From NCBI RefSeq assembly GCF_037042905.1, contig NC_087248.1:5704001-5768000 (forward strand): DNA of 64,000 nt, in the 5' to 3' direction. Origin of the DNA: Lytechinus pictus. Its lineage: Eukaryota. Positions within the stretch are counted from its first letter, which is position 1. Every line of letters begins with the position of its first letter. The notes beneath the pieces were generated by a model. That model was not told where the DNA came from. It did no database searches and worked only from the letters and a program-made list of their open reading frames with translations. Both the position numbers and the translations under genes were made by a program. This document shows positions 17,841-54,300 of this stretch, piece after piece.

Positions 17841-18157
17841 GAGAGCATTCTAGGATCACACGACGGGCCTGGAAGATTAGACAGATCATTAACATCAATA
17901 TCAACATTCTGGTTCTCGATAAAAACTGCAGCTTTTTCGTATTCTTTCTCGTTCCCCTCGTAGTCGACTGGTAGTTTCTTCCCCGTCAAACGTTCATACT
18001 CGATGAGTGGAAAATTAGACGATATGTAAGGTTCAAACCACACAACATGGTCATCATCGACCACGCTCAGACATTTCAGCAGCGATGTCGACATCGAGCG
18101 CGGAACACAAGCTAGAAATATTCTATGTTGTAGGGGAATCGAACCATTTTCAGCCAT
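17841..18157 (-). CDS. Sulfotransferase-like B: intact first coding exon with no exon 2 of its own (alternative first exon of gene A, or a gene fragment)
   Basis: aaaATGG start and an open 317-nt exon (same length as A exon 1) encoding IFLACVPRSMST...WFEPY, ending in a phase-2 donor TC|gtaagt. No exon-2 homolog seen in 13400-17840. Confidence 0.7.
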
Positions 18158-18892: not shown

Positions 18893-19088
18893 CACTCTTA
18901 AAAATGTTGGGCAACATACGGTCCACACAACAATTGGTTAAAACTTTATCCAATTCTGGGTAGTTTTACACCAATAATGTGTGCTTTGGGTGAAAACTAC
19001 ACAGTATTGGTGTAAAACTACCCAGAATTGGATAAAGTTTTAACCAATTGTTGTGTGGACCGTATGTTGCCCAACATTTTTAAGAGTG
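18893..19088. mobile_element. 196-bp hairpin MITE in the divergent promoter region
   Basis: 84-bp perfect inverted repeat (cactcttaaaaatgttgg... / ...ccaacatttttaagagtg) around a 28-bp spacer. Confidence 0.85.
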
Positions 19089-19268
19089 GCAATAGTTTCC
19101 GTTGAGCAAACAGTAAAGTTTGGATAACACATGCAGAGCATACGTACAATAGCAAAGCAGCCAGAACGATAATATCTCCTGTATTCAGTTCCCTGTCTAA
19201 ATTAAGACGCTGATCCAAGAGCCCTAGCTTTTACTGCCGAACAACTTGAAGGTGAACGTCGTCAAGTA

Positions 19269-22210
19269 ATGGCGGATGCCAAACGATCTCGTCTCATCTT
19301 CATTTGCATTCAAAGGTCTGGGTCGACATCAATCCTGAAATGTTTGAGCTTCATTGACGGGCTCGAGGCATGGTTCGAGCCGTATGTCATCGCCAAGATC
19401 GCTATCCGAGAGTACAAGGCACATGCTGGGAAGGACCTACCGACTGATTGGAAAGAAGAGAACCGTGCCGAGTTCGACCACGCTGCTCAGTTAATACATA
19501 CTATGAATAAACTACCTTTAGTAGAAGGAAAGGATTTTGCGTAAGTAGCATTCAGTATTCTTTCCTTTAAAAACTTAATCGAACTGATCAGGGGCGTAGA
19601 CAACGGGGGGGATGAGGGGGATGCATCCCCCCCAACTCACAAGGTGGGGGGGATGGCATGTACAATCATCCCCCCCAGGTTTTGGGGAATGATATTTGGT
19701 TACTTAATAAGTCATAATGATGATAATTATAGTAATAATAATAATGATAACAATTATAATAATAATAATAATAATAATTATGATGATGATAATAATAATC
19801 CTCATCATTATTGTAATTGTGTTTATTGTTATTAGCCGCATTCACACGGTGAAAGCCAATTCAGACGGTAAAAAAAAGAAAATCTTACAAGTATTTTGTG
19901 GTTATCTTGTGGTTTGGAAACCACAAGATTAATCGCGCATATTTTGCAGTGCGCGCAATCTCGCAGTATTGTTACTCCATGGATCATAGTGATACTGTTT
20001 ATGTTTTTTGTATCTGTATGTTAATGAGCCGCCAGCCAATATCCATCTATGGATACTATGCCTGTTTCTTTGAGGTAAAAAAATGCATAGTATGTACGTA
20101 TTCATTATGCTTTATAATGAACAGACATATTGTTATTTGTTTGTTGTTTATGTGTTCTATTCACAAATGGCCACAGAGGCTGTTTTCATTCATAACCACA
20201 TACCCATATCAAGACAACAAAGACTATACCTGCGTGTACACAGTTGACATTGGTTTTTTTTTCTGAAGAGGTGTAACAGAAAAATTCACAGAGATAAATA
20301 AATACGTAGTGTGGTTCAATATGCAATACTATGTGTCAGTCCATTCTGTATTCGTATGCCACGGTGTGTAGATCTTGTCGATGTATGTCTGTCCATTCAA
20401 GGCGTAGTATGTGTGTGGTGCGCGCACCCGTGTGTGTGTGTGTGCGTGCGCGCTTGTGTGTGTTATTTTACCTCATTAAGTATGCATCAGATTGCACGAT
20501 TTCAAGTTCAAAATTGCAAAAGCTCCCTACCGTGGGAGGGGGGACACCCCCCTCCCACACCCTCCCCCCGCTCGGTCGCTTCGCTCCCTCGCTCGGGCGC
20601 TTCGCGCCCTCACTAGCGTTGGCAGCCCAATCATCCCCCCCAGGTGTACGAACCTGTCTACGCCACTGGAACTGATAGCCGGTGATGGAAGGATAGGTTG
20701 TGGAATAATTAGGTTTATAAAGTCCATAAAGTCAAAGAGTCAAAAGCTTTCTACATGTATACATATTTGAAAAAAAATGTAATGACCGAGTATATTTTAG
20801 TCTATATTTGCAAATGGCCTTATCCGCCAACATTTCTTCCACTTCAAATTCAAGATATAGAATCAATGATCGTTTTGGAATTTCAGGACCTCCAGTATCT
20901 GTCGTTGTCCTTAGGTCTACTCGAAACGTTATAGTCTTTAGATATATGAATGGAAATGGAGGAAATCATAATTCAACAAACCGCGATAGTTTAATGCAAG
21001 AGGGTCTACATGAGATTGGGTGGCTCTCTTACATGTGCCATACCAACCAACCCTCAACCACTTCAGAATTTATAACCATTAATCAGAATGATTTGTGCCG
21101 AAAAGAAACACCTTTCCCATAAGACGTCGACAAAGCCATGTGCTGGATGAAATTTTGGCGCGTTTTCTGGTCTGGACCGAGGTGCGTGAGTGACTCAGCC
21201 AGGGATTTGGCAAATACTCAACAGTCATTCCTTTTTCTGTTTGCTCATGATAACCATGTGTATTTTCATTTTCAACTGTTCTCCTTTATTTACTTGGGTG
21301 ATTTTGCTACTTTACGTTAAATCAGCTGTTTGTTTATGAAATGCTCAGTTTAAAGTAATGGTCATTACTGTGTAGTGACCTCAATCAATAGCAAATCGCA
21401 CTTGGCATGGAAATTTTTCCCCATAAATCTGAGATTAATATATAACAGCCTGACTATAGATCTTTATCTTTTACTGTCAAATAAAATTCCAATAGCAAAT
21501 TATTTGTCAATCTAACACGTTATATCATTTCTGTTGGCAGGTTTTCGGAGGTGAAACGACGTCTAGAGAATCTAAAGAGCGCCCAGGTCGTCGTCAAAGA
21601 CATGGGCGGATCATTCTGTGGTTCTCGAAAGCAGTACCTCCCTTCTCGTAATAGCGGCTACAAGTACGTCTTCATAATCCGAGATCCACAACTTGCTCTG
21701 TCGTCCTACAGAAGAGCCACCATACAGACATCTCTCACCATGCCAGGGTACACTTCTGGCAAAACAGAAGAGGACTTTGATCTTCGAGTGGATGATCCGT
21801 ACTACTACGCTGCCGGTGGCAACTACTTCAACATCCATGCGGCCTGGAAGTATGTACGAGAGAACCTCGACCCAGACCCGTTGATAGTAGATTGCGAGGA
21901 TTTGATGGCCAACCCAAAGCCATACCTACAGAAAATCTGTGAGGTTGGAGGGTTGGAGTTCCACGATGGGCTCTTAAACTGGGATGCTTCCACCGATATC
22001 ATCAAAACCTGGAAGAATCCTGGGGGAGTGCCGAAGATGCTGGCAACTGGTCTTGGGTATTTCCATCGAACAGCTATCAACAGCTCTTGCTTTCAATTTA
22101 GTAAGAAAGAGAAACCACCACTCTCCTCTGCAACGAAAGATATTCAGATGGCGGTTGCCGATGGGACAGAGTATTACAATGAGATGTACGAACTTCGTTT
22201 TAAGCCTTGA
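19269..22210 (+). CDS. P-loop sulfotransferase-like protein C (313 aa). Exons 19269-19540 and 21541-22210
   Basis: Phase-2 GT-AG intron (GC|gtaagt...ggcag|G). Motifs CIQRSGST, WFEPY, VVKDM, FIIRDPQLALSSY, IVDCEDLMANP, LLNWD. Confidence 0.87.
19589..20668. mobile_element. hAT-like non-autonomous transposon in the intron of gene C
   Basis: TIRs caggggcgtagaca / tgtctacgccactg with an exact 8-bp TSD, gaactgat. Confidence 0.85.
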
Positions 22211-25010
22211 TTAAATGGGGGTAATTATTTGAATAATTACGTTTCGACCCTCAGTTACATATCGTGTCAAAATTTTCTTAAGTAATTCCTTTATGGAGCA
22301 AGCCTCTCTTTGTAGTGTTCGAATTTAGACATTTTTCATTGGTGTCATATTCTTCACAGTCTGTGTAATGACACATGAATTCTCACACATAATATATCTA
22401 ATATGAATGCAATATTTTCTAATTTTCCATTTAATCATTGTACATCTTTGGAGAGTTGGATGGTTCCTACGCAATTTTCCAACGGGATTCGAATGTGCGC
22501 CATTTTTCATGTTTTTTAAAGCAGGGTAGATTTGAAGGGGTTTTCACAGTGATTTTCATTTGGGATCTTTTAAAAGGTGACACGACATTTTCTCCAGCGA
22601 CGTTTGCTCTGCTCTTAATATCTCAAAGGGGGTTGGGGTCAGAGTTATTGTAATAAAGTTTTTGGTTCAGAACGATGTAAATACGTGTATAATGGTTAGG
22701 GTATATTTTTGGAGGTAAGCTTTTATGTTTGGCCTGACGTGTAGACTTTCCATCAGAGAAATTGTCGCCGGGGCAAATGCCATGGACCCCTTTTAAAAAT
22801 CACCCACATATTTTTTTATGGAAAATGTAGAAACCATCAATTTTTAAAAGGGGTATTACCTTGTTAAAAGAAGGGTATGCGATGATTAAAAGTGTGATGG
22901 ATTAGAGTCACACAAGGGGTATACCTGTATTGCTCGAATATCTATCAGAGCCAGGAACCCCCCCCCATATACACAGAGCTGTATGAGCGATGATTTATTA
23001 CTTTCCATTTTGTATATAAAGAATGGTTAATTTCTTTCTAATCATTGAAACCCTGCATGCAGGATACGTACTTTCGAAATTCAATTCATTATGGATATCG
23101 TGTGCATTGTATTGATATCTGAATCGTATCTTATTTTGCTTATACTCATATAGAAACTGAGGAACCTATAAATTGCCATCGAGATTGCGAGATACGTTAT
23201 ATCACCAAGTCGTCATATTATAAAGTGTTGTATGCCGACTTCACTTGGCGAGATACGTAAACTCTCGCAAAGTCGACATATGAAAATTGTTTTGTCAACA
23301 TGGCGAGATACAATATCTCGCCAAGCCGACTTATGACAACTAGGCCTAGTGGACATACAATTTTTCATATCGAATCGGTGAGACAACGTATTTCGCCATC
23401 TTGACAAGTCGATGGTACTCAGAAGCTTCCCGAAACATCTACACGTCTGTCAACTTAATAAAAAAAAGAAATCGGACAAGCAATAAGAAAGTTATAGCTG
23501 CTTTAAAATTGAGATCACTAATACTATGTAAATTTCAAATTGGCAACTGGGTAAGTAAATTATGACAAGGGGCAAGGACAACTTTCCCATAGGCCATGTA
23601 CATGTACATTATCAGGGATTTGTGGTTTTCTCATAAGTACCCATTCCCCTGGGGCAGTAATCTAAATATAACCCAGGTAGTATATTGTTTTATGTCCTCA
23701 TGAAAGAAAAATATAATTTGAAATAAAACTTTTGGGAAAAATGACATTTTAGCCATAATATGTATTGGAGTACATGGAAGAGGAGTCCTTGCCTTACATC
23801 ACTATGACATCACACATGCGGCCAATTTGAAGTCTCCATGGGTATAGTGATTACAAATATTTACAACTTTTAAAAATTCATAACTTTCTTGTTGTTTGTC
23901 CAATATTGTTCAAACTTTCACCTATCACCTTGTCTGATTTTTCTTTTCCTTATAAAAACAAGTTTTTATTTGGGTTGGATTCCCCTTTAATGACTTTGTT
24001 TTGTATTGAAAAGAAAATAAATTTATGAAGACAAAAATGAATTATTGAATAAACTTTAAATATTTGTTATTTTGTTAAAAGTTGTCACTGAGTATTACTG
24101 AAATTGTAATTTTAATCCAAATTTCTCAAAAAGCAATCATAATTCGCAGAACAGTATCCAAGGAGGGGCTAGTCTTTAGGGGTGCCAATGCCAGGGATCA
24201 GAAAAAAAATGAGTGAGGGAAATTAAAATATTTTTATTCCCCATCACTCATTTTTCTGCTTCCTGACATTTGTATAGAGAAAGACAATGGTGAATCCCAG
24301 TTTAATCTCACCAACAACCAATTAAAGAGACACCAAAGTCAAACCCCGAATGGGATATCATTTTATAAACTACAAAAGAAGAAATTGGGGCTCTAACATC
24401 AGCTTACATGCTTGCATAAAATGGGTAATGTGCATGCCTATATCATTGTTTAAAAACAATCATGGCAAACTTCAAAGTCATATTCTTAGTTTTTGTCCGA
24501 TTTTGACAAAAAAGAAAATCATTCAGATTTTCTTATTCGTCACTTCTATCAAAAGAGGGTGAACTTTTAACTTCCCTTTAAAAGAGAAGACAAAGTTCAA
24601 ATCCGTTGAACTGGGATGATATTTCATATATGCAAACACAAAGTGTCGCAATAGTTTTTAAGAGTGGGTTATAACAATGGTCACGGCACCTGACATGCAC
24701 CGTACGCATTATTGACTGCTACACACAGATACGTCTGTAGCACGTTAAGCAAACAACAATCTCAATATATTTTTTTCGAAATTACATGTAGGGCCTATAT
24801 CATACGGTTTATTCACCTGGAATACTTCTTTCGATATATTTTCGATATCACCATCACTCTCTGGAGAATCGACGCAGTTATACATTCATGAATATATCAC
24901 TATGTCGTTGGACAAGTTTACACTGTTCTGATTTTTAGGTGTTGTTCATAGTATTTGGATATTGCCAGTGGCAGTAGCAAACCACGCTCAAAATCATCAA
25001 GTCGGCTGCC

Positions 25011-27532
25011 ATGTCGAAACCGGATCCTACGACGACATCGACAGCAGATGCCAAGCGATCCCGCCTCTTCCTTATTTGCATTCCAAGGTCCGGGTCGACA
25101 TCACTCCTAAAATGTTTGAGCTTCATTGACGGGCTCGAGGCGTGGTTCGAGCCGTATGTCATCGCGAGAATCGCTCTTCAACTGTACAAGGCAGATAAGG
25201 GGAAAGAGCTACCGACGGACTGGAAAGAAGAGTACCGAGCCGAGTTTGACCACGCTGCTCAGATAATACATGAAATTAATAATCTACCCTTAGTAGAAGG
25301 ACAGAAATATTCGTAAGTATACAGTGCGTATCAAAAAAAAGTTTACACTTAGAAAAAATCCTGTAAAATTATACATTTGTAATATCCTGAAGATTTTTCC
25401 ACATTTTAACATTGGTACTTTTTTTTTTTTTTTTAAACCCACAAGTGCACACCTATTTACCAATAATGCATATAGCATTTCCATTTATTTGAAAGCAGGA
25501 TAAAAGAGCATTGTAGATTAAATGCCTTGCTCACGGGCGTAGGTGCCGCGGCCGGGGATCGAACCCCGGACTTTCCATGTATAGCCAGGCGCCTTAGACC
25601 ACTCGGCCACGGCACCTCCACGGTACAGATCCATTTAAGCAAATGACGATATAACTGTCGAAAAATATTTCCACTTGAGTGAGCACCACTTACTTTTGAA
25701 AAGTTAGTGAAAAATGATTTGCGCAGAACTTTGAAATAGTTATGCGAATAAAAGTAGACCTTAATCATGAAGAACGTGTTGAATTTAGCTAGTAAAATTG
25801 ATTTGAAGATATCTTTTACCTTTTTAAACTTTTCCTTGCCAAAAATCCTTTGAGGAGTGCATTGCGCCCCACCCCATTCCCCCACACATCGAGGCAATCG
25901 TGACGATATTTGCTTTACACTGAGCTGTGATTTACATGAAATGGCTTAGGCTTAATGATTTTCATTTTGTTAATCATTGTCAAGCTTGGAAAAGGTGTGG
26001 AGAAACAAGTATTAAATAAAAATGAAATGTAAACCCACTTTAAATGATAAAAACTTAGTGAAAAGATGTCTGATATAAACTTTTGTACAGATTTAGTTAT
26101 GTCCTCAGATCCAGCTGGCACAAAAAGGGTAAAGGTTGTGCTTACTAAGTGTTGAAATTTCAATTTGGGTGGCAAATTTGTTACAAAATGCTTGAATGTA
26201 TCTGTTTTATTTCAGTTGACTAAAAGTGCAAGGGAAATGTATGATAAATGTTTCGCAGGGTAAATTTGATTTTCTCCTTCACACAGCGTGAAAACGAGCA
26301 TTTCTGCGCAAACAGATTTCTGCGAGCTTTACAAAAATGGACAGTGCTCACTCAAGTGTAACATTCTGTCAAAACCTTTACTTGCGTTGGATAGATGAGA
26401 CCCAAACCTAAGATTATATGTGTAAAAATTACCCACATGTTTTTTTTTTAATTTCCAGGGCTTTTTCAAAGTGTAATCTTTTTTTGATACGCACTGTATA
26501 GGCCTAGGGATTATTTTATATGAATATACTTTATATCATAGAATATGAACGATATAAAAGGATAATCAATGGCCGTTTAGAATCTCATACGTTTTAAGCT
26601 CTTCAATGTTAATTATCGTGCAGTAACATTCATGAGAATCCTTTTTCAGAAGTCAGACCGACAACCATTGTCAGCTACGTTGGTATTTTGAAAAGAAAAA
26701 CAACAAAAAATGATGGGGATATCATCCAAATAAAATGCAGCTTCCTAAAAAATTGTCCAGCGGTATGTTTGAACATGTTAGGGGTATCTTTTTAAGTTTT
26801 CACTTTGCCAGTTTGCTCATGAAAATGTTTTCTTACAATTTCCCCCATCATAATGGCAGATTTTCGGACCTGAAAAAGTGCCTTGACAATCTTGAAAGCT
26901 CCAAGGTCGTCGTCAAAGACATGGGCGGATCATTCTGTGGTCATCGGAAACGATACCTTCCTTCCCGCGACAGCGGCTTCAGGTATGTCTTCATCATCCG
27001 AGATCCTCAACTTGCGATCTCTTCCTATAGAAGAGCCACCCTGCAAACATCTCTCACCTTACCAGGTCACAACGTTGGCAAAACAGAAGAAAACTTTGAT
27101 CTCCTCGTCGATGATCCCTACTACTCCTCTTCCGGTGGCAATTACTTCAACATCCATGCGGCCTGGAAGTATGTACGAGAAAACCTTGACCCAGACCCGT
27201 TGATCGTAGATTGTGAAGACTTGATGGCCAACCCAAAGCCATACCTACAGAAGATCTGCGAGGTTGGAGGTTTTAAGTTCCAAGATGAACTTTTAAGATG
27301 GGATGCTTCCACCGATATCATCAAAACCTGGAAGAATCCTGGGGGAGTGCCGAAGATGCTGTCAACTGGTCTTAGGTATTTCCATCGAACAGCCATCAAC
27401 AGCTCTTGCTTTCATTTCAGTAAGAAGGAGAAGCCTCCACTCTCCTCTGCAACTAAAGATATACAGAGGGCCGTAGCCGATGGAATAGAGTATTACAATG
27501 AAATGTATGAAGTACGATTTAAGCCTTTATGA
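25011..27532 (+). CDS. P-loop sulfotransferase-like protein D (324 aa). Exons 25011-25312 and 26860-27532; close paralog of C
   Basis: Phase-2 GT-AG intron (TC|gtaagt...ggcag|A). Motifs CIPRSGST, WFEPY, VVKDM, FIIRDPQLAISSY, IVDCEDLMANP. Confidence 0.87.
25322..26496. mobile_element. Tc1/mariner-like non-autonomous element in the intron of gene D
   Basis: TA|cagtgcgtatcaaaaaaaag...cttttttgatacgcactg|TA. Confidence 0.85.
25419..25619 (-). mobile_element. tRNA-derived SINE (family 2) nested in the Tc1-like element
   Basis: Minus strand: ggaggtgccgtggccgagtggtctaagg (A-box), ggggttcgatcccc (B-box), poly(A) tail. Degenerate relatives near 32625-32785 and 49698-49860. Confidence 0.85.
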
Positions 27533-28191
27533 AAATGCAAGGTAACATGATTACAGGTAAATTATCACATTCATACAAAGGAACTCCGTGAACTTTCTTT
27601 GTTTTTAATTGTTGGAACCAATGTCTTAAGAGGTTTTATACAACTTATTGACTATTCATGGGTTACATTTACTTTGTTTCCCTCGAATCCTGAAAAATTT
27701 TAAGTTATGAGTTTTAAGATAATTAGTAAATTAGATTAATTATTGCCATTAATGAAGATTTAACAATTTTCAGATGGACAAAGTATTTGGCCACCTCCCC
27801 CAAACATGCCAAAATAGTAGTAAAGTCTTTGAATGAGATTAAGGGGATAAATCATCATCAACCGACTTGTACTTGTTGTAGCATCATTAGCATTCCCATA
27901 TGAGACACATTACTAACAATCTGTTCTTCATCTGATTTACTTTCTTTGGCATTAAACATGTTAGAACATACCAATTCAGAAATCAAAAGAGCAAGTAGAA
28001 TACGATACATGTATCTGATTTTGTATCATTGATCATGGAAAAATAAAGGATCACTTATAGTGAATAAACCTGTAATTACAATTATCTTTGTAATCATTTT
28101 TAGATCAATTCAATGCTCGTGCAATCAGGTAGCGAAATGATAATATTATAGGAAATATGGGCCTTATGTGTATAAAAACGATGATCGATTT

Positions 28192-28781
28192 CGCATACAT
28201 TCGTAATTCCGAAGCTTCGTTATTCCGAAGGTTCGGATATTCCGAAGGTTCGTATTTCCGAAGGTTCGTATTTCCGAAGGTTCGTAATTCCGAAGGTTCG
28301 TTAGTCCGAAAACGAAATGAGGTTCGTAATTCCGAAGGTTCGTTAGTCCGAAAAAGAAGTGAGGTTCGTAATTCCGAAGGTTCGTTAATCCGAAAACGAA
28401 ATGAGGTTCGTAATTCCGAGGGTTCGTAAGTCCGAAAACGAAATGATTAACGAACCTTATTTCGTTTTCGGACTAACGAAACTTCGGAACAACGAACCTT
28501 ATTTCGTTTTCGGATTAACGAACCTTCGGAACAACGTACCTTATTTCGTTTTCGGATTAACGAGCCTTCGGAACATCGAACCTTATTTCGTTTTCGCATT
28601 ATCGAACCTTCGGAATAACGAACCTTCGGAATAATGCCACAAATGTTCGGATTAACGAACCCTTTTACGTTTTCGGATTAACGAACATCGAGGTATAGGC
28701 AATTAACGTGTTTCAGAATTACGAACCTTCGGAATAAAGAACCTTCGGAATTACGAACCTTCGGAATTACGAAGTGTAACC
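28192..28781. mobile_element. Foldback-like MITE built from ttccgaaggttcg tandem units, 9-bp TSD (copy 1)
   Basis: Begins cgcatacattcgtaattccgaag and ends cttcggaattacgaagtgtaacc; gatcgattt on both sides. Confidence 0.9.
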
Positions 28782-32048: not shown

Positions 32049-35000
32049 ATGGCTGCCAAGGACCATGTTGAGGAGATGAAGGAACTTACGAGCGGTGTGA
32101 CTGAATTGATTGGTGAGTTTTGGCATAGTTTAGAGGATCTGTCACCAGCAGGATCCACCGAACCAGGCCATCTTCTTGATCAACTTCCCCTGGAAGCTCC
32201 TCAACATCCTGATAAATGGCAAGATCTATTGGATGATGTCAGGAAGATGATCATTCCAAACGTAAGTTGGCTTATGCTACCAACCCCGTTCTCTCTTTTT
32301 AAAAATATTTACTCTTTCTGAATCTTACGTTTCTCATCGATTTTTTTCCTTCTGAGCTCTATCTCTCTTTTATACACCCCACACATCAGGACCACGCAGT
32401 TGGTGCAAGGTCTTCCCCTGAAAGACTACATAATAAAATCGCAGACTGTCGATCATTTGACTTGAAAAACTTACGTGAATTTTGTGGCTTGTCAAAATTT
32501 CGAGGAGGAACATGTCCATCTATTCTTCCTCCAACGTTGACAGTTTTCGTTGTTTGTTTTACAGTAAATCTCCCAAAAGCTATACTGTCTTGCACCCGCC
32601 CCCACACACCCGCGCGCCCTCACATTTTTTTCAAACAAGTCCATACCGAATTTCCGAGAATGCATGTAGCATTTCCATTTATTTTAATGCAGGATAAAAC
32701 AGCACTATCGATTAAATACCTTTCCCACGGGCATAGGTATCGTGGCCGGAGGTCGAACCCCCAGACTCGGCCACGGAGCCTCCACACCTACACCTACCCG
32801 ACACACACACCCATACACACACGCACGCAAACACCCTCACGCAACCAAACACATACCACATCTATAAATCAAAAAGTTCACCCACAATGTATACCCCCAG
32901 AAATGTTGGCCCTATATTGTGAAACGGATGAAATTTTACTAATTTTAACAATAATAATATTCATTATCGTGTATAATTCTTAAGTATACATATTTTGCAT
33001 ATTTTTGTGATATCTAATGCTTTATCTTGCAAAACACCAGTTTATGTTTATTTAGATGTCTAACCTTCGATGAGTCAGATAATTAATGTGAACAGACAAG
33101 GTTATGTGGATTTTAACCTGTTGAGATTCTTCACTTCTTTTACAAATACTAATTTCAATGACTTTCACACTCCAAATGTTATGGATTTTGAATAAAACCA
33201 GGCTATAGCAAAGAAATGATCAAATTTTGGAAACACTGTTATTGTAATCCTAAAGATTTATTTAAATCACCAAAGGTTTTCGATTTCCCCTAACTACGGT
33301 CGATCAGGAATTATATTAAATCCATTGGATTGTAATTTGATTTTTTTTAAAATCATAGATGCCTCACCTATCGAGTCCTAATTATCATGGATATGTGGAG
33401 ATTGGAACATCTGCTCCATGTGTGGCGGCAGCCCAACTTATCGCTGCTTTGACCTCGCCAACATGTACTTGGGTAAAATCTTCACCTTCATTTATCTTTT
33501 TAATACAAATAGATCAAGCTATCACGGACAGGTCAATGATCTTAACTTCTAACGTTTTTATATGTAATATTGTTGTCAGCTATCATTTATAGATGATAGC
33601 TCGTAAACACGTCGTATTTGTCAAGGAGGGGTTCAAGGTCTCGTGAAAATCTTACAGGTTAAAAACTAGCTGAAAATCAAATAGACATAACCCATTTCCG
33701 ATTAAATTATATTCAATAGATTACGTGAAAAACTGTATTGTAATGGAGGTTAAATAAAAGCTGGCATTTTTTTTTATTTCATTTTTATTTAAACAATATT
33801 TCAATAGGGTACCCTTTCAGCAGAAGCTGGTATCAAAAGGGGCCCTAAAAACATAATGACAAAACACGTATATACAAATGATAAAAATATACAACGTAAC
33901 ATACGTAAAAACATTATATAAATCATACATATTAGAACATAGAAAGGGATGGTAAGTTGGAGTCATTTAAATATTTGTAACACAGGAACCATTGACATTT
34001 TAACATTTGCTGAACATAATATATGATTTGAGTTCTTTTTTAAAACTAGAGAGGGTGGATAGAGTTTTAAAATGAAGGGGCAAGGAATTGAATATTGATA
34101 TTGAGGAGATAATGAATGATCAGTTTTAGCATTCATTATTGCATTTTGGGGCATCGAGTTGTAGGTTGGAGGCAGGTCTTTTATTTAGGTTATGTTTTTC
34201 GGATACTAATTTAAAGTTATTATAGAAGATAAATTATTTAAACTTTTAAATATGAATATACATGGGTTTCTAAATATCGTACATTATTCCTGAAATTTTG
34301 GAGGGAGCTGAAAAATCCTAATTAAAAAATACTAATTTCTTATGGTTTGTAAAAAATACAGATAGGTGAATGTGGAATGAATACGTGAAACCAAAATGTT
34401 GATGAATAAAAATCCCCATAACGTTTACGATAAAGTATGACTGTATGCTTCCCATCCCGCATCGTCATAATGTAAGCATGGTTTGACTCCTCCCTGAACA
34501 TGTTGAATTGTCATTGTAATGTTGTTGTATCCTGCTGTGATTCAAGAAAGAATGTTTTCTTCAATACTTGTCAAACAAAATGTTATCCTTTGACTTCATT
34601 CAATGCAGCACGTGAATGGAACTGGAACAGAGCTTGAGATGCGAATGACAGATTGGTTAGGTAGAATCCTGGGACTTCCTGATCAATTTCTATTCAGTTC
34701 AGGCATAGGCAATGGCGGAGGTGTTATACAGGTAAAAGAGGATAGTGTTCAGCTGACTCCAGAGGAGCGTTTCATGGAAGGACTTGTCAGACGTGTTATC
34801 CGACAAGTCCTGTTTTATCCGACAGTTACCATAGGAACAGTGCTTCTCAGCCAATCAAATCCAGGAAAGTTGTCAGATCTGACAACCTTTCAGATGAAAA
34901 TGTTGATGAAACGCTCCTCAAATAGATGAACTCTATCTAGTATATCAACAAACTACATTGACGAATGTGAACAAGAATATATATTCTGCTATGGTCAGAT

Positions 35001-38000
35001 GGTATCCCACTCTAAACACATGTTAGTCAGATTTGAACAGACGGAATGTTCCCCTCGAGCAGGAGTATAATTCTAGTCAAAATTGACAAGATTGTAGAAA
35101 GAATGACCCCAATTCTAGTCAGCGTGGACAAGGATTATGAAAAAACAATGCTAGTAAAAATCAAAATATCATGCAAATGAAATTGATCTCTAGATTCCTG
35201 GAAAATGACGGTTACTTTTTTGAGGGATACTACGAAGGATTTTTGTTTTCAATTGTCATGATTATACAGAATGTAAAAGATGTCGAAATAGACTTGATCT
35301 TAGATGGCACATGTGTGTAATTACGTAACCTAACAACGATGATCTAGATTTTATATTAAATTTATAAACATACGGCGATGATGATTCTTATATTGATAAA
35401 ACTATTTTCACCTCAAGGGCACATTTCATGTTGAATGAACTCTTTCAAACAATCCTTTGAAAATGTCCCATTCGTCCTTTTTGTTTTCTTATGAAGGAGA
35501 GTGCGAGTGGCAGTTGTATTTTGATGCTTGTCGCTGCAAAGAGACGTGTCCTTGACAAACTGCGTCAGACAGATAAAGATTTAGATCCATATGATGTCTC
35601 GTCTAAGTTCGTTGCTTTAATGAGTGATCAGGTAACACATTTATGTATTCTTTATCTATTAATCCATACAGTATACATCTACACAGAAAGAGAATTTGGG
35701 TTAAGTAAAGTATAAGTAGTACAAAATCGCAGTTGGCTGCTTTATTGAGTGACCACGTAACTCATTCGTGTATTATTTATCCAAATCGGGCGGCGAAGTT
35801 TTTGCGACAAAGAAAAAAAAAGAGAAAAAGAAAACAAAAATTGAATGAAAAGGGTGAAATGTTTATATCACTTGTTGAAAATTATGTCGAAATTTGTTTT
35901 ATAATTAGGTTTTCATTATCAAACATGTCAAAGGTCAAATATTTCGCTACCTCGCCACTTTTAATAATTTTCCTAAAATATGCCATGTCCTACCGATACG
36001 CCACAACGATCAAAGATTATGATCCAACGGGCAGTGCTCATTTTTTAATAAAAACAATGAAAATTAGGGGTATTACTACTCAAATATCCAGCCCAGTCTT
36101 TCCAACTCTCTTTCTTTGTCCTTTATCTTCTTTCATGGTCTTTCCCTCTCTTTTATTAGCCACCATGATTTGTTGTAATAAGTCATATCTTGTGCAGGGA
36201 TCTACACTCGAAATAAAAACCGCTCGTGCTTGATATCAAACCTCGCCAAATATCATGGAGATTCACATTCAAAACTGCAACATGTTAACAAAATTGATAG
36301 AAAACCACAGGTTTAGATTAAAAGCTATAATCTTTTGTTTATTTAATCTCCTTTTTAGGCTCATTCTTGTATCGAACGTTCTGGGTTTGTAGCTGGGATT
36401 CGAACCCACATCCTACCAACCGACGAGACAGGATCACTCAGAGCTCAGGCTCTTCTTGATGGCATAGCTGAAGTCAAATCACTAGGAAGGAAACCCATTT
36501 TTGTAAGTTGATATTTCATTAATGATATCCCAATTTATATTTACAATCATCTTATTTTTAAACTTGATTGTCTACAGGGATAGCTATATAGGGTCGTGGT
36601 GGTAATGGTTTGTTTGTATTTATTTCCATTTAAAACAAAATATATACATGATTAAAAAAGAAAAATCGTCATATAAAATATGGAGGATTGCCCATTGCAG
36701 CGGTATTAACATAATACCGCTGTTTCTCCATGTGGTCCTTTGCAACGTAAATACATGTTATAAAAAAATATTTATACACAATACATAATCAAATACATTA
36801 CAAGAAAAAAATGCAAAGACTAAAACTAAATTATGGTTAAAAATATCCCAGTATTAATGGTGAATATGAATCCTGATGGAAATAGTATACAATTTGACAA
36901 TTTGAGTGAAATTGTGACTGTCTTTCTATAAATTCTGGCGAATTGAGTGTTTTTGTCAGAGATTAATGCAATATAACGGCCAAACATTATGTTCAGATGC
37001 CCCGCTCCCTAATATAACACTCGGCGTTAAAAACACTGCGCCTCAGTTATTTCATAAACACATCAACTGTCGTACTTTTCATGATCCATATTTCTCTAAT
37101 TTTTATTCCGACAAAACTAGCTCGGTGTTACCCTAGGGTCGACAACAACTTTGGCTTTCGATGCTCTAGCAGAATTGGCTCCTATATGTGAGTGCTTTCA
37201 CAAGATCATTATTTCGTTATTCATTTAGGACAGCCTTATCATCATTTATTCTTCATAAACTAGGGTTTTGCCTGGGAGTTTAACCGGCCGTTACCATAGC
37301 AATAGTCAGAAATCTATGCATCTCGGCCAATCAAAACCAAGGAAAGATCTGACAGATCAGATCTGTCAAGTTGTGGGACGGTAAATGTTGATAAAACGTT
37401 CTCAGTGTCCCCATTCACCATCATCATCATGCTGCTATGCCAGGCAGGCAAGCCCTTTTTTCGTATTTTAAATGATTAGTTATCATGCCGTGTTTATTTG
37501 TTCTTCAGGTAATGACGAGGGAATATGGGTCCATGTAGATGCTGCCATTGCTGGCTCTGCCTTTCTTTGTCCTGAATTCAGACATCTGATGGCTGGGATT
37601 GAGGTATTAAACTTTCTCTTATTCTGGAAAAGATTTTAGATAGCAGGGCTCCCTTGTAAAGCAGGCCTTTGGCTTGATTGGGACTACCCTGCTTTTTATG
37701 AAGAAAACATGAATAAATAAATAAATAAAATAAATAAATCACGAAAACATGGCCGATTTTGACATGATCGCACAACTGAAATCGGGAAATCCGTATAATA
37801 GTGAAAGTCCTAATAACATCACGCTTATCGTAATATCTGCTCAATCCACCATAGTATTTGGCCTCTGTGATAAAACAAAAAAAATATGTAAATAAAAATA
37901 TCCGTTTCGTGCACATTCGTATGATTGGAACATTCATTTAGGAAGGGCCGAATGGTTACTGCGTAGGAGTATCATCAGAGTATATATTTCTTTTTAAAAA

Positions 38001-41000
38001 TGAATGTGTTATTATGTCCACTCGATTTGATTTACTATATTAAAAAAGAGTGAATTAGGCATTTTAGGTCTTTTCAATCTTATTGAAACCTCAATATTTG
38101 CAGACAAATGTTAATGTTCACTTAGTGTTTGACTCTTCTCAATGAATAGAATGGAAATGGTTATTAAACAAAAATCTATTGCCGCCAGAATACCAATTGC
38201 AGAATTCCATTCAATAAAATATGAGCATAGGCCTACATCTAAATTACATGAAAGCCCAACATGATAACATAATGCTTATTATGCAGTTTTCGTCATTACA
38301 AGAAGTGCTAAGGACGGTGAGAATAGTTCAGGGCTACAGTCTGAATCCTCTGGTACATTGTCTGATTATTGTGATGAAGATATTTTGCTAAGGAGATAAA
38401 ATTATATATATCTTGATAAAGTTTTGTTTAACACTTCGTAAAAGATTGCTCCCAGTAATCTTTTTTTAATGATTATCTTTTCTCTTTGTACTTGGAACAG
38501 CTTGCAGACTCTTTCAACTGTGGACCGCATAAGACAATGTTAGTAACGATGAGCTGTTCAGTTCTTTGGGTCAAAGACAGAACAACTGTTGAGAGCTCAC
38601 TGGCCATTGATCCTCCGTACCTTGATAATCATCTAGAAAAACCTCACGTGGATTACAGGGTAAGAGTGATATTGGTCGTAATGATGATGATGATGATGAT
38701 GGTGATGGTGATGGTGATGAAGGCGACAACGACGACTGTGACAATGACAAAGATGAGGGCGATATGAACGACAAAGACAACAATGGTGACCAAATGATTG
38801 ATGATGGTTGATGATACTGGTAATGACGCGAATGATGACGACGACGACGACGACGATGATGATATTGATGAAGGCTTCAACGAAAAAGACGACGCTGATG
38901 ACAAAACCACAAACATTGATGATGATGATGATTATTATTATGATTATGATGATGATAACTATGATGATGATGATGATGATGATGATGGTAATGATGAGTA
39001 AAATGATCTGGACAACGATGAATAGTAAAGAAATTATTTAAACAACGTTGATGAGGGAATTGAAATTTTCAAAACCTTGTAAATATAACAAATACCGTTT
39101 TTGACAATTGTCATACTAAACATAATTCATAATTTAAGTACTTCATTAATTCACAGACGACTATTTTTTCCCTATAGCACTGGAGTTTCAATCTAACTCG
39201 ACCGTTTCGCTCACTCAAACTTTGGTTTGTTATTCGACTGTTTGGCGTTCAAGGGCTACAAGATCACATCAGGAAGGTATTCAGAAATTAAAAAAAAAAC
39301 CCAATCCTTTATACAGAAAATAAATAGGCCTATTCTAAAAAGGTGGTTGAAAGTTTCTTATTCTTAGATGATTTATTAATGAAAAACAAAAAAGTTTCTA
39401 ATAACTCTCAATGACATCAATCCACCGAAAATTGTAGAAATTGGTGATTCAATCCCATTTCTCACAATATTGTATTCACACCCTCTACGGCAGCTCTGTG
39501 CTTAACGAAGTGTTCGCCAACTCTGATTCACGTCTGGGGTCGACTCCCAATCTCGACATGAAAATGTTATCACAATTTTCTTTTGCTGAATTAAGAGTAA
39601 GTTGGCACCTATCCGAGACTTGTAATTAATTTCAAAGTTTCAAAAAGCCATTGGTGCGATAGGTTACGAGAGTTCTGATTTTTCTAAACCAAGTTTTCAA
39701 CAAAATATTTTTCATTTTACATATATGAAGGCGGGGGGGGGGGGGGGGGGTTGCAACACCATGACTGATGCCACAGCAGGCACACTACATAATCTGTATC
39801 CAGGGCCCCGTCTTACAAAGAGTTATGATTGATTAGATCAACCTCAACTATGGAAATCCAGATCTGCAATGCATAATTGTTCAAAATATTTTCTAGATAT
39901 GATGTAAAGTCAAAGTACGTTTATCTTTTTTTTTAATTCAGGGTGCTTTTTTTTTGCTTACAAAGGACATTGACCACATTTTCTGGAGAAAAATAATGAC
40001 ATATATGGATTTCTATATAGTTGAAGTTGATCGGATCAATCGTAACTCTTTGTGAGAAGGGGCCCTGACTTCATACCATCGGTTTTATTGGTATGACTGT
40101 CACACTGATATGAATGTCGCTAATGAGGGCTCCTGATTTTTTGCATGCATAACAGAAAATAGTTTTCAAACGATCGAGGATTTTGGTTAGACCACGGATA
40201 GGGGGGGGGGGGCGATTTCATATGCTATTCGTGTCTAACGTTTGTTTCATTATTCAATTCTTGTTAATTGTACAATAATGTAGTAATAATGTGAGTCGGC
40301 TTTGACAGGTCAACGGCCTTTCCGACTCCCTACATCCGCTACATTTTTTTTACATTTCTACCTTTTTTTTCATATTGTTTATAGTATTTTGACATTTTTT
40401 TTTACATTTGTTTTACATTTCTACCTTTTTTTCTTATTGTTTATAGTATTTTGACATTTTTTAAATCCTTCTGTATATGTATTTTAAAAGGATGTTAGAA
40501 ATAAATTGAATTTAATTCTCTATGTTAAGTTGGCATTAATCTATCATGTCTATTGATCACTTAACCATTGTTTCTTCTCGTTTCGGATGTCAATATCATG
40601 TATCTCACTTCACTCCACAGCAATCTCGGCTCGTTAAAGAGTTTGCCCACCTGGTGAGCACCGATGCCCGATTTGAGCTGTGCGCAGAGGCGATATACAG
40701 CCATGCGTGCTTCAGATTAAAGGTTAGTAATTACATCTTATGAGAAGTTATTACAGGGAGTTTATGCCTCTGTTACACCGGTGTTACTGATTCCAGACCG
40801 ACCAAATCTATTACGTTATTTCCAATGACACAACTATCAGTCGGTTTGGTGCGGACTTGCTTGTTTGACTGCAGCTGACGGTATATATCAGTGACAATAG
40901 AAATATGAAGGAAAATCCAAGTATAGAGCATTATCATCACCAGCAAATTGTAATGATATGAAAACGAGAGGGGCTGAATGCGGTGAGGTTTCCGAATGCG

Positions 41001-42593
41001 CGAAATTAGTGTATGATTGGATTTAAAATGTTCATGTCAAAACACGATGGCACCACCCCTGGTAATGGTTGTGAGTTTCATGACATTCGCTCTGGGGAGC
41101 GTTTCATCAATATTTTCATCCGACAAGTTGTCAGATCTGACATCTTTCCATGATTTTGATTGGCTGAGAGGCACTGTTCCTATGGTAACTGTCGGATAAA
41201 ATGGGACTTGTAGGATAAAACGTCCGACAAGTCCTTTCATGAAACGCTCCCCTTTAAATTCCAATACTAATCGAATGGCCAACTTCACCCCTGGATTTAA
41301 AACTATACCCTACTCCAAACCCGCATACATTCGTAATTCCGAAGCTTCGTTATTCCGAAGGTTCGGATATTCCGAAGGTTCGTTATTCCGAAGGTTCGCA
41401 TTTCCGAAGGTTCGTAATTCCGAAGGTTCGTTAGTCCGAAAACGAAATGAGTTTCGTAATTCCGAAGGTTCGTTAGTCCGAAAACGAAGTGAGGTTCGTA
41501 ATTCCGAAGGTTCGTTAGTCCGAAAACAAAATGATAAACTAACCATATTTCGTTTTCGGACTAACGAACCTTCGGAACAACGAACCTTATTTCGTTTTCG
41601 GATTAACGAACCTTCGGAGCAACGAACCTTATTTCGTTTTCGGATTAACGAACCTTCGGAACATCGAACCTTATTTCGTTTTCGGATTATCGAACCTTCG
41701 GAATAACGAACCTTCGGAATAACGCCACAAATGTTCGGATTAACGAACCCTTTTACGTTTTCGGATTAACGAACAACGAGGTATAGGCAATTTGCGTGTT
41801 TCGGAATAAAGAACCTTCGGAATTACGAAGTGTAACCCTCTAAACCTACCCTAAACGTAACCTAAAACCCTATTGCAACCCAAACCCTAACCCTACCTCC
41901 AGTAGCGTACCGTGAACCGCAGGAGACAAAGCATTGGGGGGGGGGGCAGTGCATTGTCTGTGAACAATGCTTTGCCCCCCCAATGCTTTGTCTCCTCCGA
42001 GTCACGGTACGCTACTGCCTACCTCTTAGACGAAATTAAGCCCAGAACAATTGTCGCAGGAGCAAATGTCGTGGCACCGTTAAATGTTATGTTAAGCTTT
42101 ATATTCTGCTTACGTACTTATTGCAGAAATGTGGACGTAACATGAATGTCATCAATATTCATAATAACATACAAGAGGTATCAAAGAAATGTTTTAAGTA
42201 TTTGATCAACTGAATTTAGCAGTCGTTTTATTTTCCATGGATAATTGGAGTCGGATTAAATTAACAGTTATCAGCACTTTTGACATGTTAGAGGTAATAT
42301 TTTTCCTCATTGAAGTTTGGTCACTGTTATAAGATTTTATGACCGAGTAAAATAGCAATAAATATTTTCCCCGACAGAAATCTGACAATGAAACAAATCG
42401 AAATCTTCTGAACCAGATTAACATGACACGAAAAGTTGTCTTGACAGGATCTGTGTTCAAGGAAAAATATATTCTACGTTTCGCTGTATCCAGTCCGTTC
42501 ACTGAAAGCAAGCATGTAGAGTTTGCTTGGAAGATAATCACGGAAGCAGCGAATGAACTCAAAGGAGCAGATACTGATGTTCTAAAAGATTAA
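32049..42593 (+). CDS. Divergent aromatic-L-amino-acid/histidine decarboxylase-family enzyme (group II PLP decarboxylase, 488 aa). Exons 32049-32261, 33359-33472, 34609-34731, 35497-35631, 36359-36502, 37121-37187, 37509-37603, 38501-38659, 39178-39276, 40621-40722, 42378-42593
   Basis: All ten introns are GT-AG and in phase, at positions matching DDC exon borders as I recall them. Motifs [46 protein letters not shown] (PLP lysine), [29 protein letters not shown]. No stops or frameshifts. Confidence 0.93.
33770..34270 (-). mobile_element. Degraded 3' fragment of an L2/CR1-group LINE
   Basis: Minus strand encodes ...[18 protein letters not shown], a typical ORF2 end, followed by a 3' UTR and an A-rich tail. 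Confidence 0.5.
34762..34919. mobile_element. About 160-bp MITE; inverted copy at 41094-41252
   Basis: TIRs gaggagcgtttcat / atgaaacgctcctc; the interior is the reverse complement of 41094-41252. Confidence 0.8.
38680..39000. repeat. (GAT/GAC)n low-complexity tract in decarboxylase intron 8
   Basis: Directly visible trinucleotide repeats downstream of the donor at 38660. Confidence 0.9.
41322..41837. mobile_element. Foldback-like ttccgaaggttcg MITE, 9-bp TSD (copy 2)
   Basis: Same termini as 28192-28781; flanks ctccaaacc / ctctaaacc. Confidence 0.9.
41900..42017. mobile_element. 118-bp hAT-like MITE
   Basis: TIRs cagtagcgtaccgtga / tcacggtacgctactg; exact 8-bp TSD cctacctc. Confidence 0.85.
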
Positions 42594-51009: not shown

Positions 51010-51360
51010 ATGGATATCCTCACCATTTCCTGGTCAACCAGCGTCTTACTTCTGATCATTTGTTTGGTTTCCCACGGCGGGGCGGACTACCAACTGACGG
51101 TCCTCCACACCAACGATGTCCATGCACGGATCGAACAGTTCAACAAGTATGGTTCCGAATGTAGCCAGGAGGATGCTGAGGACGGAGCGTGCTTCGGAGG
51201 GGTTGCTAGGCGGGCAACCAAGGTCAAGGAGATCAGGAATCGGGTAACCAATGTTCTTCTCTTGGATGGTGGTGACCAGTATCAGGGTACCATGTGGTTC
51301 TTTATTTACCAGGGTGCTGAAGCATCTCACTTCATGAACATGATAGGATATGATGCAATG
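51010..51360 (+). CDS. NT5E: Ecto-5'-nucleotidase (CD73-like), first coding exon; the remaining exons were not found in the window
   Basis: Signal peptide followed by LTVLHTNDVHARIEQ, CFGGVARR, LLLDGGDQYQGTMWF and MNMIGYDAM|gtgagt. These are metallophosphoesterase motifs, and the exon ends where NT5E exon 1 ends. Orthology versus paralogy is untested. Confidence 0.88.
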
Positions 51361-54300
51361 GTGAGTTATCGTAGGGAAATATATTTATGAAAGTTTTCAT
51401 CCTAAACCTTTAGTGATACTTATTCTTGATATGTGGGAAAGGATTTTCTCATAGAGATGCCATTTTGCCTCTAACGGGGGTGGGGGGATGGGGGACTACT
51501 TGAGGGGCGCTGCGATGGATAAGATCAACTATCTTAGGGGTATAAACATGGGGTTTGGACATTATTTATAACATATTTTGCAACAAAGTCATGATCATAC
51601 TGTATAACTCAAATTTTGAAAACATGCAGCATACAAAATTGAATTTAACCCATCAGGCTGTCAGGGGCGGGGCTAGAGGGTGGTGGGACAGGTCGTGACC
51701 GCCCCTATTTTTCACAAGTTATAAAATGAAATGGGGGAAAAAATTGGAAATGTATGATACGAGGGAAAAAGTAAGAACTTAATCCCCAATTATCTTTAGA
51801 AAGAGAGAGTATACATTGCTTTTACCTCGTCTCGCCCTATTTCACATCAAGGCTATATATTAGTCTGCAGGCACAGACCCTGATTGAAACTTTGATCAAC
51901 AAGTGTGTCTCCACGCAAAGACTAGCACATACAAATGAGCGAGATGGCCTTCAGTACACAAGGCATGAGTAGGCTGCTTATTCAGACCCTCAACTCGAGT
52001 GAAGGGTTTGCCCAGCAGACTAGCTACAAATATATAGCCTTTGTATGACTTAACAAGGATTACATTTATATCAGTCTGTCGGTTCCAAGTCATCAATAGT
52101 TTGTGGTCATAGGGTCTAAATACGAAAAGAAGATCACACGGCTCTATCTATTTGTTTTATTTGTCATTAATTTATATTCGATAATCCAAGGTTGGTGGTA
52201 TCCCCATATTATTGGGTAAAATTAAACAAAACATTGAGATTCTGTGTGTTGTACCTCCATGGATAAGCGGAGCTTAGTAAGACCTCAATTGTACACTGCA
52301 AAAACTCCGGTGTTGATTTAACACCAGCCCGGAATCTATATATGTCCACACCAGAGAAGTGTTAAACAACACCAGTTTCGTTTTGGTCTAACACCAGAAA
52401 GATGTTTATACAACACCAATTAGTATTAAAACAGCATCGGTTTGATTCCAAACTGGTGTTTCAATTGCGATATTTGTGTGTGTAAGAAGGGAAAATAAAG
52501 AGGGAGATAGGAAGAGAGGACAAGAGGGAGAAATATTATAAGGGGGGGGGGGGGGCAGGGAGTGGGAGATTGAAAGAACGAGAGAAAGGTAGGCAGAGAC
52601 AGAAGGGACATATATGCAGACAGAGAAAAAGAAAGGGAGGGCCAGAAAATATGAATGAAAGGGCACTGCAAAGCATTTTCCTCGAATTTCCATAAAATTC
52701 ATATATACCAATATAACTTGATTAAGATTCGATTGCTACCATGGAAACCCCCATCCGTCATATTTTTTTTGGAAAGATACTGATTATCATCTAAGTCCTC
52801 TTGACGATATCATCCGAACTGATTATTTTCGCCGTCGAAACGATTATTTTCCGAAAGATTAGGTTTGGGTACGTCAATACTTTTTGACATTTCAGCGACC
52901 CAATCTCATGATTGGGTGGATAAACCCTCTCTTCGTTTCCTCCAGCATGAAGTATGAAAAAAAAATGCCCACACTGACGACGAAAGCACGAAGCAACATT
53001 CGGTGCAACATGTTGGCTTTAGTATTGATCTGACTTATTACCAGTGGCAGCACCACAAGGGGGCTGGGAGGTCATCGCCCCTAAAAAAATTCAATTAGTG
53101 AAAAAAAGAAGAAAATAGGTAGATAGGAATATAGAGAGGGGAACAGAAGAGAATCCAAATGAGATATCTGAGTCGTGTAGCTCTGTAATACCCATATAAT
53201 GTAATTCAATCGAGAAAAAAAAAACATGACGTCATAATATTTAGGTCGTCTTGCCCTGATAAAAAAATATATATCCCAGTGCCGCCCGTGTTTATTTCAT
53301 AAGCATGGATGTTAAATAACATGCATGACCTGGGCCCCGTTGCACAAAAGTTACCATTATGGTAACTTTGCCTTCCAGTGGTAAATTTTATGGAATCCTT
53401 GATTTTGATTGGTTGTTGATCAGCATTACCATAGTAGTTACCATTGAATTGCAAAGTTACCATAATAGTAATTTTTATGCAACAGGGGTCAGAATAACCA
53501 TACCTAAATTTAACTCCTTGTCCAGAAAGTTAAACAAACATTTCAATGAAATCCTGGCAAAAATCCACTTGCAGCGAACACAGACATGATATTGAAATCT
53601 AAAAAAAATTGCAACGTCAGATGCGAACAGTCTTGCGTCATTATGTGATGTAGTGTAAATTTCATGAATTGTAATATCCACAAGATTCATGGTCAATCAA
53701 TATCATATTTTTTTTTGCATGAAGTGCGTTTGAATTACTTGTTTGTAAATACATTTTAAGCATAAGTAGGATACATCAAGACTTCCGAGTTTACGAATAT
53801 ATCCGCTAAAGTGTTCTTTTCCGAGTGGAAGACACCTTGGGAAGACATTTCGTAGAATTTGTGGTATAAAGGAATCCCATTCAATTCTCGTCTTGACTAC
53901 CCCTCAATAATACGATAATATGCTAACCATGCTAAACATCTGAAAGGCTATCTACCCATGAGGAAGAAAGCAAACAAACAAAATAAAACTGTGTCATCCT
54001 TTTATGATTTTGTTGGGGAACCGTTGCTGACATGTTTTTCTGTTTTTCTTAAAATTCCATTCAATTCGAGGATTGTCTACCCCGTCCACATAATTATTGT
54101 CAACTTATTCCATGTTATTAGAGGCTCCATTTTTCTTGAAGTTTTATTCGTTATAGGCCTATATGCCATTCGTTATGAATTGAAATATTGTCAGATATTC
54201 ACTAGGCATCGAGTTGAAATATTGTCAGATATTCACTGGGCATCGAGTCTGGAACAAGTAACTCTAAAGGAATTCGTATATGCTTAGGTTTTTTAAGACT

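Follow-up and report, generated by a model that had tools for sequence, protein, structure and literature searches.

Gene structure and substrate cleft

We analysed a 64-kb stretch of the genome of the sea urchin Lytechinus pictus (NC_087248.1, positions 5,704,001–5,768,000 of the forward strand; hereafter the window, in whose own positions coordinates are given unless another sequence is named). Positions 32049–42593 of its plus strand hold a relative of DOPA decarboxylase (DDC, also AADC) whose 11 exons join into 1,467 nt, that is, 488 codons and a TAA stop, across ten introns that all have GT..AG ends. The exons were recognized as eleven open stretches between 31.9 and 42.8 kb whose translations run in the same order as DDC, and the product is identical, residue for residue, to RefSeq XP_054752755.2 ('aromatic-L-amino-acid decarboxylase-like', Lytechinus pictus). 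The exon model agrees with the initial annotation of the window, which had described an intact 488-codon frame and ten canonical introns. The window contains no further decarboxylase copy, as tblastn with the product matched just the eleven exons, and no Rfam family matched in or around the gene. The gene is known so far by automatic annotation alone, and literature searches turned up no publication that deals with it or with DDC paralogs of echinoids.

The product was aligned with a near-human DDC, with urchin, insect and frog DDCs, and with a bird HDC and a beetle TDC; residue numbers follow DDC, corrected for a 3-residue insert in the near-human reference. Exon 1 (32049–32261) runs from the ATG through codons 1–71, which encode the N-terminal helix of the dimer interface, to a GT donor, and covers positions 1–32 of the family profile PF00282 (Pyridoxal_deC). 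Exon 2 (33359–33472, codons 72–109) encodes active-site loop 1 and the beginning of loop 2, and carries W71L, F80V, P81E, T82I, I101P, G102T and F103C. In exon 3 (34609–34731, codons 110–150), which ends in GGGVIQ, HVNGTG replaces AASPAC at 106–111. Exon 4 (35497–35631, codons 151–195) retains the S-A-S phosphate-binding turn (DDC 147–149), and exon 5 (36359–36502, codons 196–243) starts with A-H, of which the H is DDC His192. The short exon 6 (37121–37187; 67 nt, ending in phase 1) supplies the Thr246 equivalent, and exon 7 (37509–37603; PF00282 E value 1e-11) encodes HVDAAIAGS, with Asp271 and Ala273 retained and Y274I. Exon 8 (38501–38659), for which the nearest solved structures are Drosophila and human DDC, holds G-P-H-K with the Schiff-base Lys303, the changes N300G, W304T, F309M and D310S, and a catalytic loop with Tyr332. 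In exon 9 (39178–39276) a segment of the gene's own replaces HWQIPLGRRFRSLK: QIPLGRR at 350–356 has become SFNLTRP (Q350S, I351F, P352N, G354T and R356P), which puts Thr at position 354. Exon 10 (40621–40722, codons 384–417) begins the C-terminal small domain, and exon 11 (42378–42593, codons 418–488 and TAA) retains the Arg447 equivalent. PF00282 was matched by eight of the ten exon pieces scanned (all but exon 6), in profile order and over most of positions 1–375, and is also assigned to the full-length protein in the database.

Retained are Tyr79, Ser147-Ala148-Ser149, His192, Thr246, Asp271, Ala273, His302, Lys303, Tyr332, Arg347, Leu353, Arg355, Arg358 and Arg447, and among them are the Schiff-base lysine (K303), the aspartate at the pyridine nitrogen (D271), the stacking histidine (H192) and the remaining ligands (T246, S149 and H302) that define an enzyme dependent on pyridoxal 5′-phosphate (PLP). 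In DDC, PLP is held by Asp271, Ala273, Thr246, Ser149, Asn300 and His302, and the channel to the cofactor is lined by Trp71, Tyr79, residue 80, Ile101′, Phe103′, Leu353′ and Gly354′; residue 192 sets decarboxylase against aldehyde synthase, and Gly354 matters for dopa specificity (PMC12078590). Structural work on DDC further indicates that Thr82 binds the catechol para-hydroxyl and Phe103′ stacks on ligands, that Tyr79, Phe80, Thr246 and Leu353′ make hydrophobic contacts, and that residue 81 touches the ligand through its backbone carbonyl, and it also describes the role of His192 (PMC3285636). Among the positions of the catechol/indole pocket (Trp71, Tyr79, Phe80, Thr82, Ile101′, Phe103′, Leu353′ and Gly354), Tyr79 and Leu353 alone are kept; the others are now L, V, I, P, C and T. 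In total, about 20 residues of the pocket and active-site loops are altered. The initial annotation had listed H192, D271, H302, K303 and Y332 as retained, Thr at position 354 and every substitution from W71L to the SFNLTRP segment, and had read them as a kept catalytic core with replaced substrate-contacting residues; the alignment bears out each of these points.

To place these changes against ordinary divergence, we compared the protein with 142 other full-length family members, drawn from animals with a few fungi and protists. None of the 142 has E81, T102, C103, I274, G300, S310, N352 or P356, and the protein shares at most two of its 16 derived states with any one of them. At columns conserved in at least 90% of the family, it deviates in 29 of 113, against a family median of 1.3%; only non-animal or fragmentary rows deviate more.

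The changes are also unevenly placed. We defined active-site segments as residues 66–84, 100–111, 296–311 and 323–357, with loop limits taken from the human DDC structures. Compared with the DDC of its own species, the protein is 36% identical in these segments and 51% elsewhere (Fisher's exact test, P = 0.017). Ordinary members of the family compared with the same urchin DDC show the reverse: human DDC, bee DDC and beetle TDC are 65–76% identical in the segments and 51–57% elsewhere (P = 0.003–0.04), and bird HDC is 56% identical in the segments and 50% elsewhere (not significant). The divergence of this protein is concentrated in the active-site segments.

The fold itself appears to be preserved. 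AlphaFold2, run on a 60-sequence alignment, predicted a DDC fold with confidence (mean predicted local distance difference test score (pLDDT) 92.2; predicted TM-score 0.91), and the best Foldseek match was human holo-AADC with L-DOPA methyl ester (8ora; TM-score 0.95, root mean square deviation 1.4 Å, 42% identity), ahead of further DDC and HDC structures and of plant members of the family. When two copies were predicted together the score was 0.92, whereas the best of three controls scored 0.00, with at least 96% contact agreement between runs and a partner pLDDT of at least 88; among proteins of solved structure, 21 of 30 same-chain pairs attain the mark for a dimer, and 0 of 23 single chains do. 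This result may reflect memory of solved DDC dimers and is to be read as likeness rather than proof. The predicted interface takes in the changed residues of loops 1–3 and the G-P-H-K segment. The profile match, the PLP residues and the predicted fold-type I fold and homodimer place the protein among the group II PLP decarboxylases.

Origin and maintenance of the gene

A six-frame PF00282 scan of the entire L. pictus assembly (812 Mb) revealed four AADC-type genes elsewhere. One, at C2:29.41–29.47 Mb, is a canonical DDC with a complete canonical pocket, 88% identical to Strongylocentrotus purpuratus AADC and 80% identical to Diadema DDC; the gene in the window is 45–47% identical to the same two proteins. 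An HDC-like gene lies on C3 and a TDC-like gene on C14, both modelled as projections of BLAST matches. The fourth is a second divergent paralog on the minus strand at C2:29.360–29.374 Mb (29360000–29374400), about 40 kb from DDC. Its exons 2–11 are intact, with the same lengths as those of the window gene and canonical splice sites throughout, and an exon-1 match lies just upstream (29374179–29374355); for both C2 genes, exon 1 was located by position only. A database search returned no annotated protein for this second paralog.

The two divergent genes have E81, P101, T102, G300, S350, T354 and P356 in common, which indicates that these states arose before the two copies split. The second paralog is altered further still, reading G-P-Q-K (H302Q) at the site of DDC's N-P-H-K, together with A148N, S149T, R347K and H348N. 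In a tree of 48 rows (IQ-TREE, LG+C20+F+G4), the gene and its ortholog from Lytechinus variegatus (support 100/100) join the second paralog (100/100), and this trio is nested in echinoderm DDC (100/99) as the sister of echinoid DDC (96/88). The C3 gene falls in the HDC clade (100/100) and the C14 gene in the TDC clade (100/98), and the window gene in neither. Measured from the duplication node, this gene lies at 1.80 substitutions per site, the second copy at 1.24 and urchin DDC at 0.34, which makes the branch of this gene about five times as long as that of its DDC sister. In approximately unbiased tests, trees with a later duplication were disfavoured, both when it followed the divergence of Diadema (P = 0.023) and when it followed that of S. 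purpuratus (P = 0.006), subject to the caveat of long branches. A one-to-one ortholog of DDC, HDC or TDC, the outcome under which the initial annotation would have withdrawn its proposal, is rejected, as a canonical copy of each is found elsewhere in the same genome. The gene arose in the echinoid lineage by duplication of DOPA decarboxylase.

How widely the duplicate is distributed was approached through protein collections. A collection of 5.8 billion clusters contained no protein at 47–90% identity to this gene; after the Lytechinus cluster, the best matches were echinoderm and other animal DDCs at 41–47%, so the annotated S. purpuratus and Diadema proteomes seem to lack an ortholog. No decarboxylase lies within 10 kb of the Diadema sulfotransferase loci (relatives of genes that neighbour the decarboxylase in L. 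pictus), a result that says nothing of Diadema as a whole. Two short open reading frames from European Nucleotide Archive (ENA) assemblies, P0130 (69% identical over exon 1) and P0023 (60% identical over exon 8, also with T304, M309 and S310), resemble this gene much more than they do any DDC or the second copy, which places the gene in at least one further, more distant species.

The gene is also transcribed. A 2,171-nt contig from run X1, 99% identical, joins exons 4–10 exactly at the six predicted junctions of introns 4–9 (among them 35631|36359, 36502|37121, 37187|37509 and 39276|40621), and such an intron-less form is that of a transcript. With exons 4–10 as its aligned part, the length of the contig would fit a full mRNA with a 5′ untranslated region of about 74 nt and a 3′ untranslated region of 630 nt.

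The L. variegatus ortholog lies in the same neighbourhood, with sulfotransferase genes upstream and a 5′-nucleotidase downstream, and its eleven exons are open with GT–AG splice sites throughout. The two proteins are 96% identical, differing at 19 of 488 amino acids; none of the 19 differences falls at a changed pocket position, and two lie in the flexible catalytic loop. By exon, identity is 93% in exon 1, 38 of 38 residues in exon 2 and 40 of 41 in exon 3, and the active-site segments as a whole are 97% conserved. The rate of non-synonymous substitution (dN) is 0.018 and that of synonymous substitution (dS) 0.122, which gives a dN/dS of 0.147; 38 of the 58 differences are synonymous, against an expectation of 23% (binomial P = 7e-12), and aligned intron sequence differs by 9.7%. 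The initial annotation had argued from the open frame that the gene is not a pseudogene and had named lack of expression with dN/dS near 1 as the result that would overturn its view; the frame, the spliced contig and the intact ortholog all favour its argument, and the observed ratio of 0.15 is far from that value. Taken together, these data demonstrate that the gene is intact, transcribed and under purifying selection.

In L. variegatus (CM031018.1), two near-identical blocks of sulfotransferase and decarboxylase genes lie at 15.99 Mb and 18.62 Mb, 2.6 Mb apart. Their decarboxylase copies differ by five amino acids (dS 0.027), and the double block may be a recent segmental duplication, or else an assembly artefact or uncollapsed haplotype. 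The L. variegatus RefSeq models of the decarboxylase are truncated (358, 360 and 114 amino acids), whereas the exons are complete in the DNA of both copies, exon 11 included; the truncations are thus a fault of annotation.

Proposed function and its alternatives

We propose, with a probability of roughly 60%, that the gene is an echinoid DDC duplicate with a new function, encoding a working PLP decarboxylase that acts on a different substrate. On this proposal the DDC-like fold and pairing would be preserved, and Lys303, Asp271, His192, Thr246, Ser149, His302 and Tyr332 would hold and activate PLP and protonate the carbanion, while the three loops that form the substrate cleft at the dimer interface have been rewritten. 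The aromatic cage is lost to smaller aliphatic or polar side chains (W71L, F80V, F103C, W304T, F309M and Y274I); the hydroxyl-binding Thr82 has given way to Ile, Glu stands in place of an otherwise universal Pro81, Thr occupies position 354 and an Arg is missing from 356. Such a cleft would be expected to offer more room, with a less aromatic and more negative character.

As the residues for cofactor and proton transfer are kept, and His192 and Tyr332 match decarboxylases rather than aldehyde synthases, we take the protein to be most likely a working PLP-dependent α-decarboxylase that releases an amine rather than an aldehyde. The rebuilt cleft argues against catechol, indole, phenol and imidazole substrates bound in the usual mode, and the residue identities make a substrate other than L-DOPA, 5-hydroxytryptophan (5-HTP), tyrosine or histidine most likely; an amino acid that is bulkier, aliphatic or modified in some other way is a possibility. 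From the residue identities the initial annotation had likewise suggested a substrate other than DOPA or histidine, possibly non-aromatic or modified. Individual candidates (a basic amino acid paired with Glu81, an aliphatic one, or iodothyronines) could not be ranked, and we claim none of them.

Several observations weigh against this proposal. Asn300, a phosphate ligand conserved in 140 of the 142 relatives, is Gly here, and Tyr274 and Asp310 have changed as well; because N300G, Y274I and D310S all touch the cofactor site, cofactor binding may be weakened, and catalysis may be reduced or lost. The catalytic loop is two residues shorter than that of DDC and differs between the two Lytechinus species (N340Y and L342P in the protein's own numbering). 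The evidence for expression is a single contig, and the run that supplied it is only presumed to be RNA. Finally, the annotated proteins of S. purpuratus and Diadema yielded no ortholog, although the tree dates the duplication to before they diverged; this points to loss of the gene in them or to a clade misplaced by long-branch attraction.

The cofactor-site changes bear most directly on the idea that the protein is a pseudoenzyme, with its fold and dimer selected for a non-catalytic role (pairing with or regulating DDC, or binding amines or amino acids) and decarboxylation lost. N300G takes away a phosphate ligand that the family conserves, three further changes (Y274I, D310S and W304T) adjoin the cofactor, 29 of the 113 highly conserved columns are departed from, and the sister paralog on C2 goes further, with H302Q, A148N, S149T, R347K and H348N. 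Such proteins, however, usually lose some of their catalytic residues, whereas this one retains the Schiff-base Lys, Asp271, His192, Thr246, Ser149, His302, Arg447 and the catalytic Tyr, with no difference at these sites in L. variegatus, and the changes cluster at substrate contacts rather than at catalytic positions. We therefore regard a pseudoenzyme as unlikely, although the loss of Asn300 keeps it in play.

Somewhat more doubtful is an acetaldehyde synthase like the insect 3,4-dihydroxyphenylacetaldehyde (DHPAA) synthase encoded by amd or the plant aromatic aldehyde synthases, which would couple decarboxylation to oxidative deamination and yield a reactive aldehyde and H2O2. Like amd, the gene is a lineage-specific Ddc duplicate with an altered active site. 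In plants, aldehyde synthases follow a rule by which the catalytic-loop Tyr becomes Phe, but that residue is Tyr here. Phe103 and the 350–356 loop, which shape the oxygen tunnel in DHPAA synthase (PMC12078590), are changed, yet residue 192 is His and not the Asn that the rule for the insect enzymes requires (PMC12078590). Neither switch to aldehyde synthesis, in the insect or the plant manner, is therefore present.

We consider it improbable that the protein is a redundant DDC, still active on L-DOPA and 5-HTP, whose odd residues are drift tolerated after duplication. The gene nests in the echinoderm DDC clade, has DDC exon structure and retains Tyr79, Leu353 and His192, but the catechol contacts and specificity determinants Thr82, Phe80, Phe103, Trp71 and Gly354 have all been replaced; moreover, divergence that is focused in the active-site segments and then 97% conserved between Lytechinus species is unlike drift. 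A decaying or unexpressed pseudogene, at which the very long branch and the truncated L. variegatus models might hint, is rejected, as L. pictus and both L. variegatus copies have an unbroken 488-codon frame and all their splice sites, and the spliced transcript and the dN/dS of 0.15 contradict it.

Neighbouring genes and comparison with known systems

Upstream of the decarboxylase, positions 12284–27532 of the window hold an array of two-exon sulfotransferase-like genes with weak Pfam matches (Sulfotransfer_3, Sulfotransfer_1 and Sulfotransfer_5). One gene lies on the minus strand at 12284–13396 and two on the plus strand at 19269–22210 and 25011–27532, with an extra N-terminal sulfotransferase-like exon at 17837–18157. 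Their closest proteins are uncharacterized LOC genes of L. pictus (88%), L. variegatus (78%) and Diadema (47%). Downstream, 51010–51390 and the sequence beyond it hold the first exon of a 5′-nucleotidase (NT5E-like) gene with a signal peptide; its counterpart in the L. variegatus neighbourhood has 584 amino acids with Metallophos and 5_nucleotid_C domains. L. pictus and L. variegatus share the order sulfotransferases, decarboxylase, 5′-nucleotidase. It is conceivable, if far from likely, that the sulfotransferases and the decarboxylase form a small metabolic gene cluster, in which a bulky or modified amino acid would be decarboxylated in the wider, less aromatic pocket and the amine or its precursor sulfated; halogenated tyrosine or thyronine, or thiol-histidine, would be candidate substrates. 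If true, the product would be an echinoid-specific signalling or defence metabolite.

The introns of the decarboxylase contain several repeats. In run X1, contig depths over a stretch of intron 9 (39744–40105) sum to about 28,000, compared with about 10 over the exons, and loose ends and odd joints are numerous; this is the signature of a very high-copy repeat abundant in that run, and it had no Rfam match. Intron 10 holds tandem repeats of 16, 33 and 42 bp that read as open frames (41330–41714), and a related array lies upstream of the gene (28157–28429). Introns 3 and 10 carry a dispersed 150-bp element in opposite orientations (34764–34912 and 41101–41252), and the element is present in the L. 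variegatus locus as well.

Set beside known enzymes, the protein is like canonical DDC in its group II PLP fold (TM-score 0.95 to human AADC), its predicted homodimer, the exon structure that it has in common with urchin DDC, and its PLP and catalytic residues; it differs in being 42% identical to human DDC and 48% identical to its own sister DDC, and in its changed pocket. HDC belongs to the same family and likewise lacks DDC's Gly at position 354, but HDC has Ser354 and keeps Trp71, Pro81, Phe103, Asn300, Asp310 and Arg356, whereas the urchin gene has Thr354. The plant aromatic amino acid decarboxylase (AAAD) family, which comprises tyrosine and tryptophan decarboxylases and aromatic aldehyde synthases, contains structural neighbours (TM-score about 0.9) and offers a precedent for a few active-site or loop residues redirecting substrate choice and chemistry in this fold; it is, however, an independent radiation, at 31–39% identity, whose pockets are still aromatic. 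Insect DHPAA synthase (amd) resembles the urchin gene as a lineage-restricted Ddc duplicate that kept the fold and took on a new role, which for the urchin gene we infer. In Drosophila, amd adjoins Ddc, a position comparable to that of the second urchin copy, about 40 kb from DDC. The chemistry of DHPAA synthase was altered by His192Asn together with a Tyr79/Phe80 swap, and L-DOPA is still its substrate (PMC12078590). The urchin gene, by contrast, keeps His192 and alters the substrate-binding residues instead.

In animals, DDC, HDC and TDC are normally framed as the full family of aromatic amino acid decarboxylases (PMC10244343). The echinoid clade is an independent DDC offshoot outside this framing. 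Insect amd, in which the chemistry changed via one catalytic residue, is the known exception, and the echinoid clade is of another type, with its substrate site rebuilt and the chemistry switches untouched. Enzyme duplicates often change function, and the finding is not surprising in kind. It nevertheless identifies a maintained enzyme with a likely new product, and thereby a route to a possibly new biogenic-amine or natural-product pathway in echinoderms, in a species in which laboratory breeding and editing are feasible. It also provides a natural experiment on the residues that set specificity in a drug-target enzyme family.

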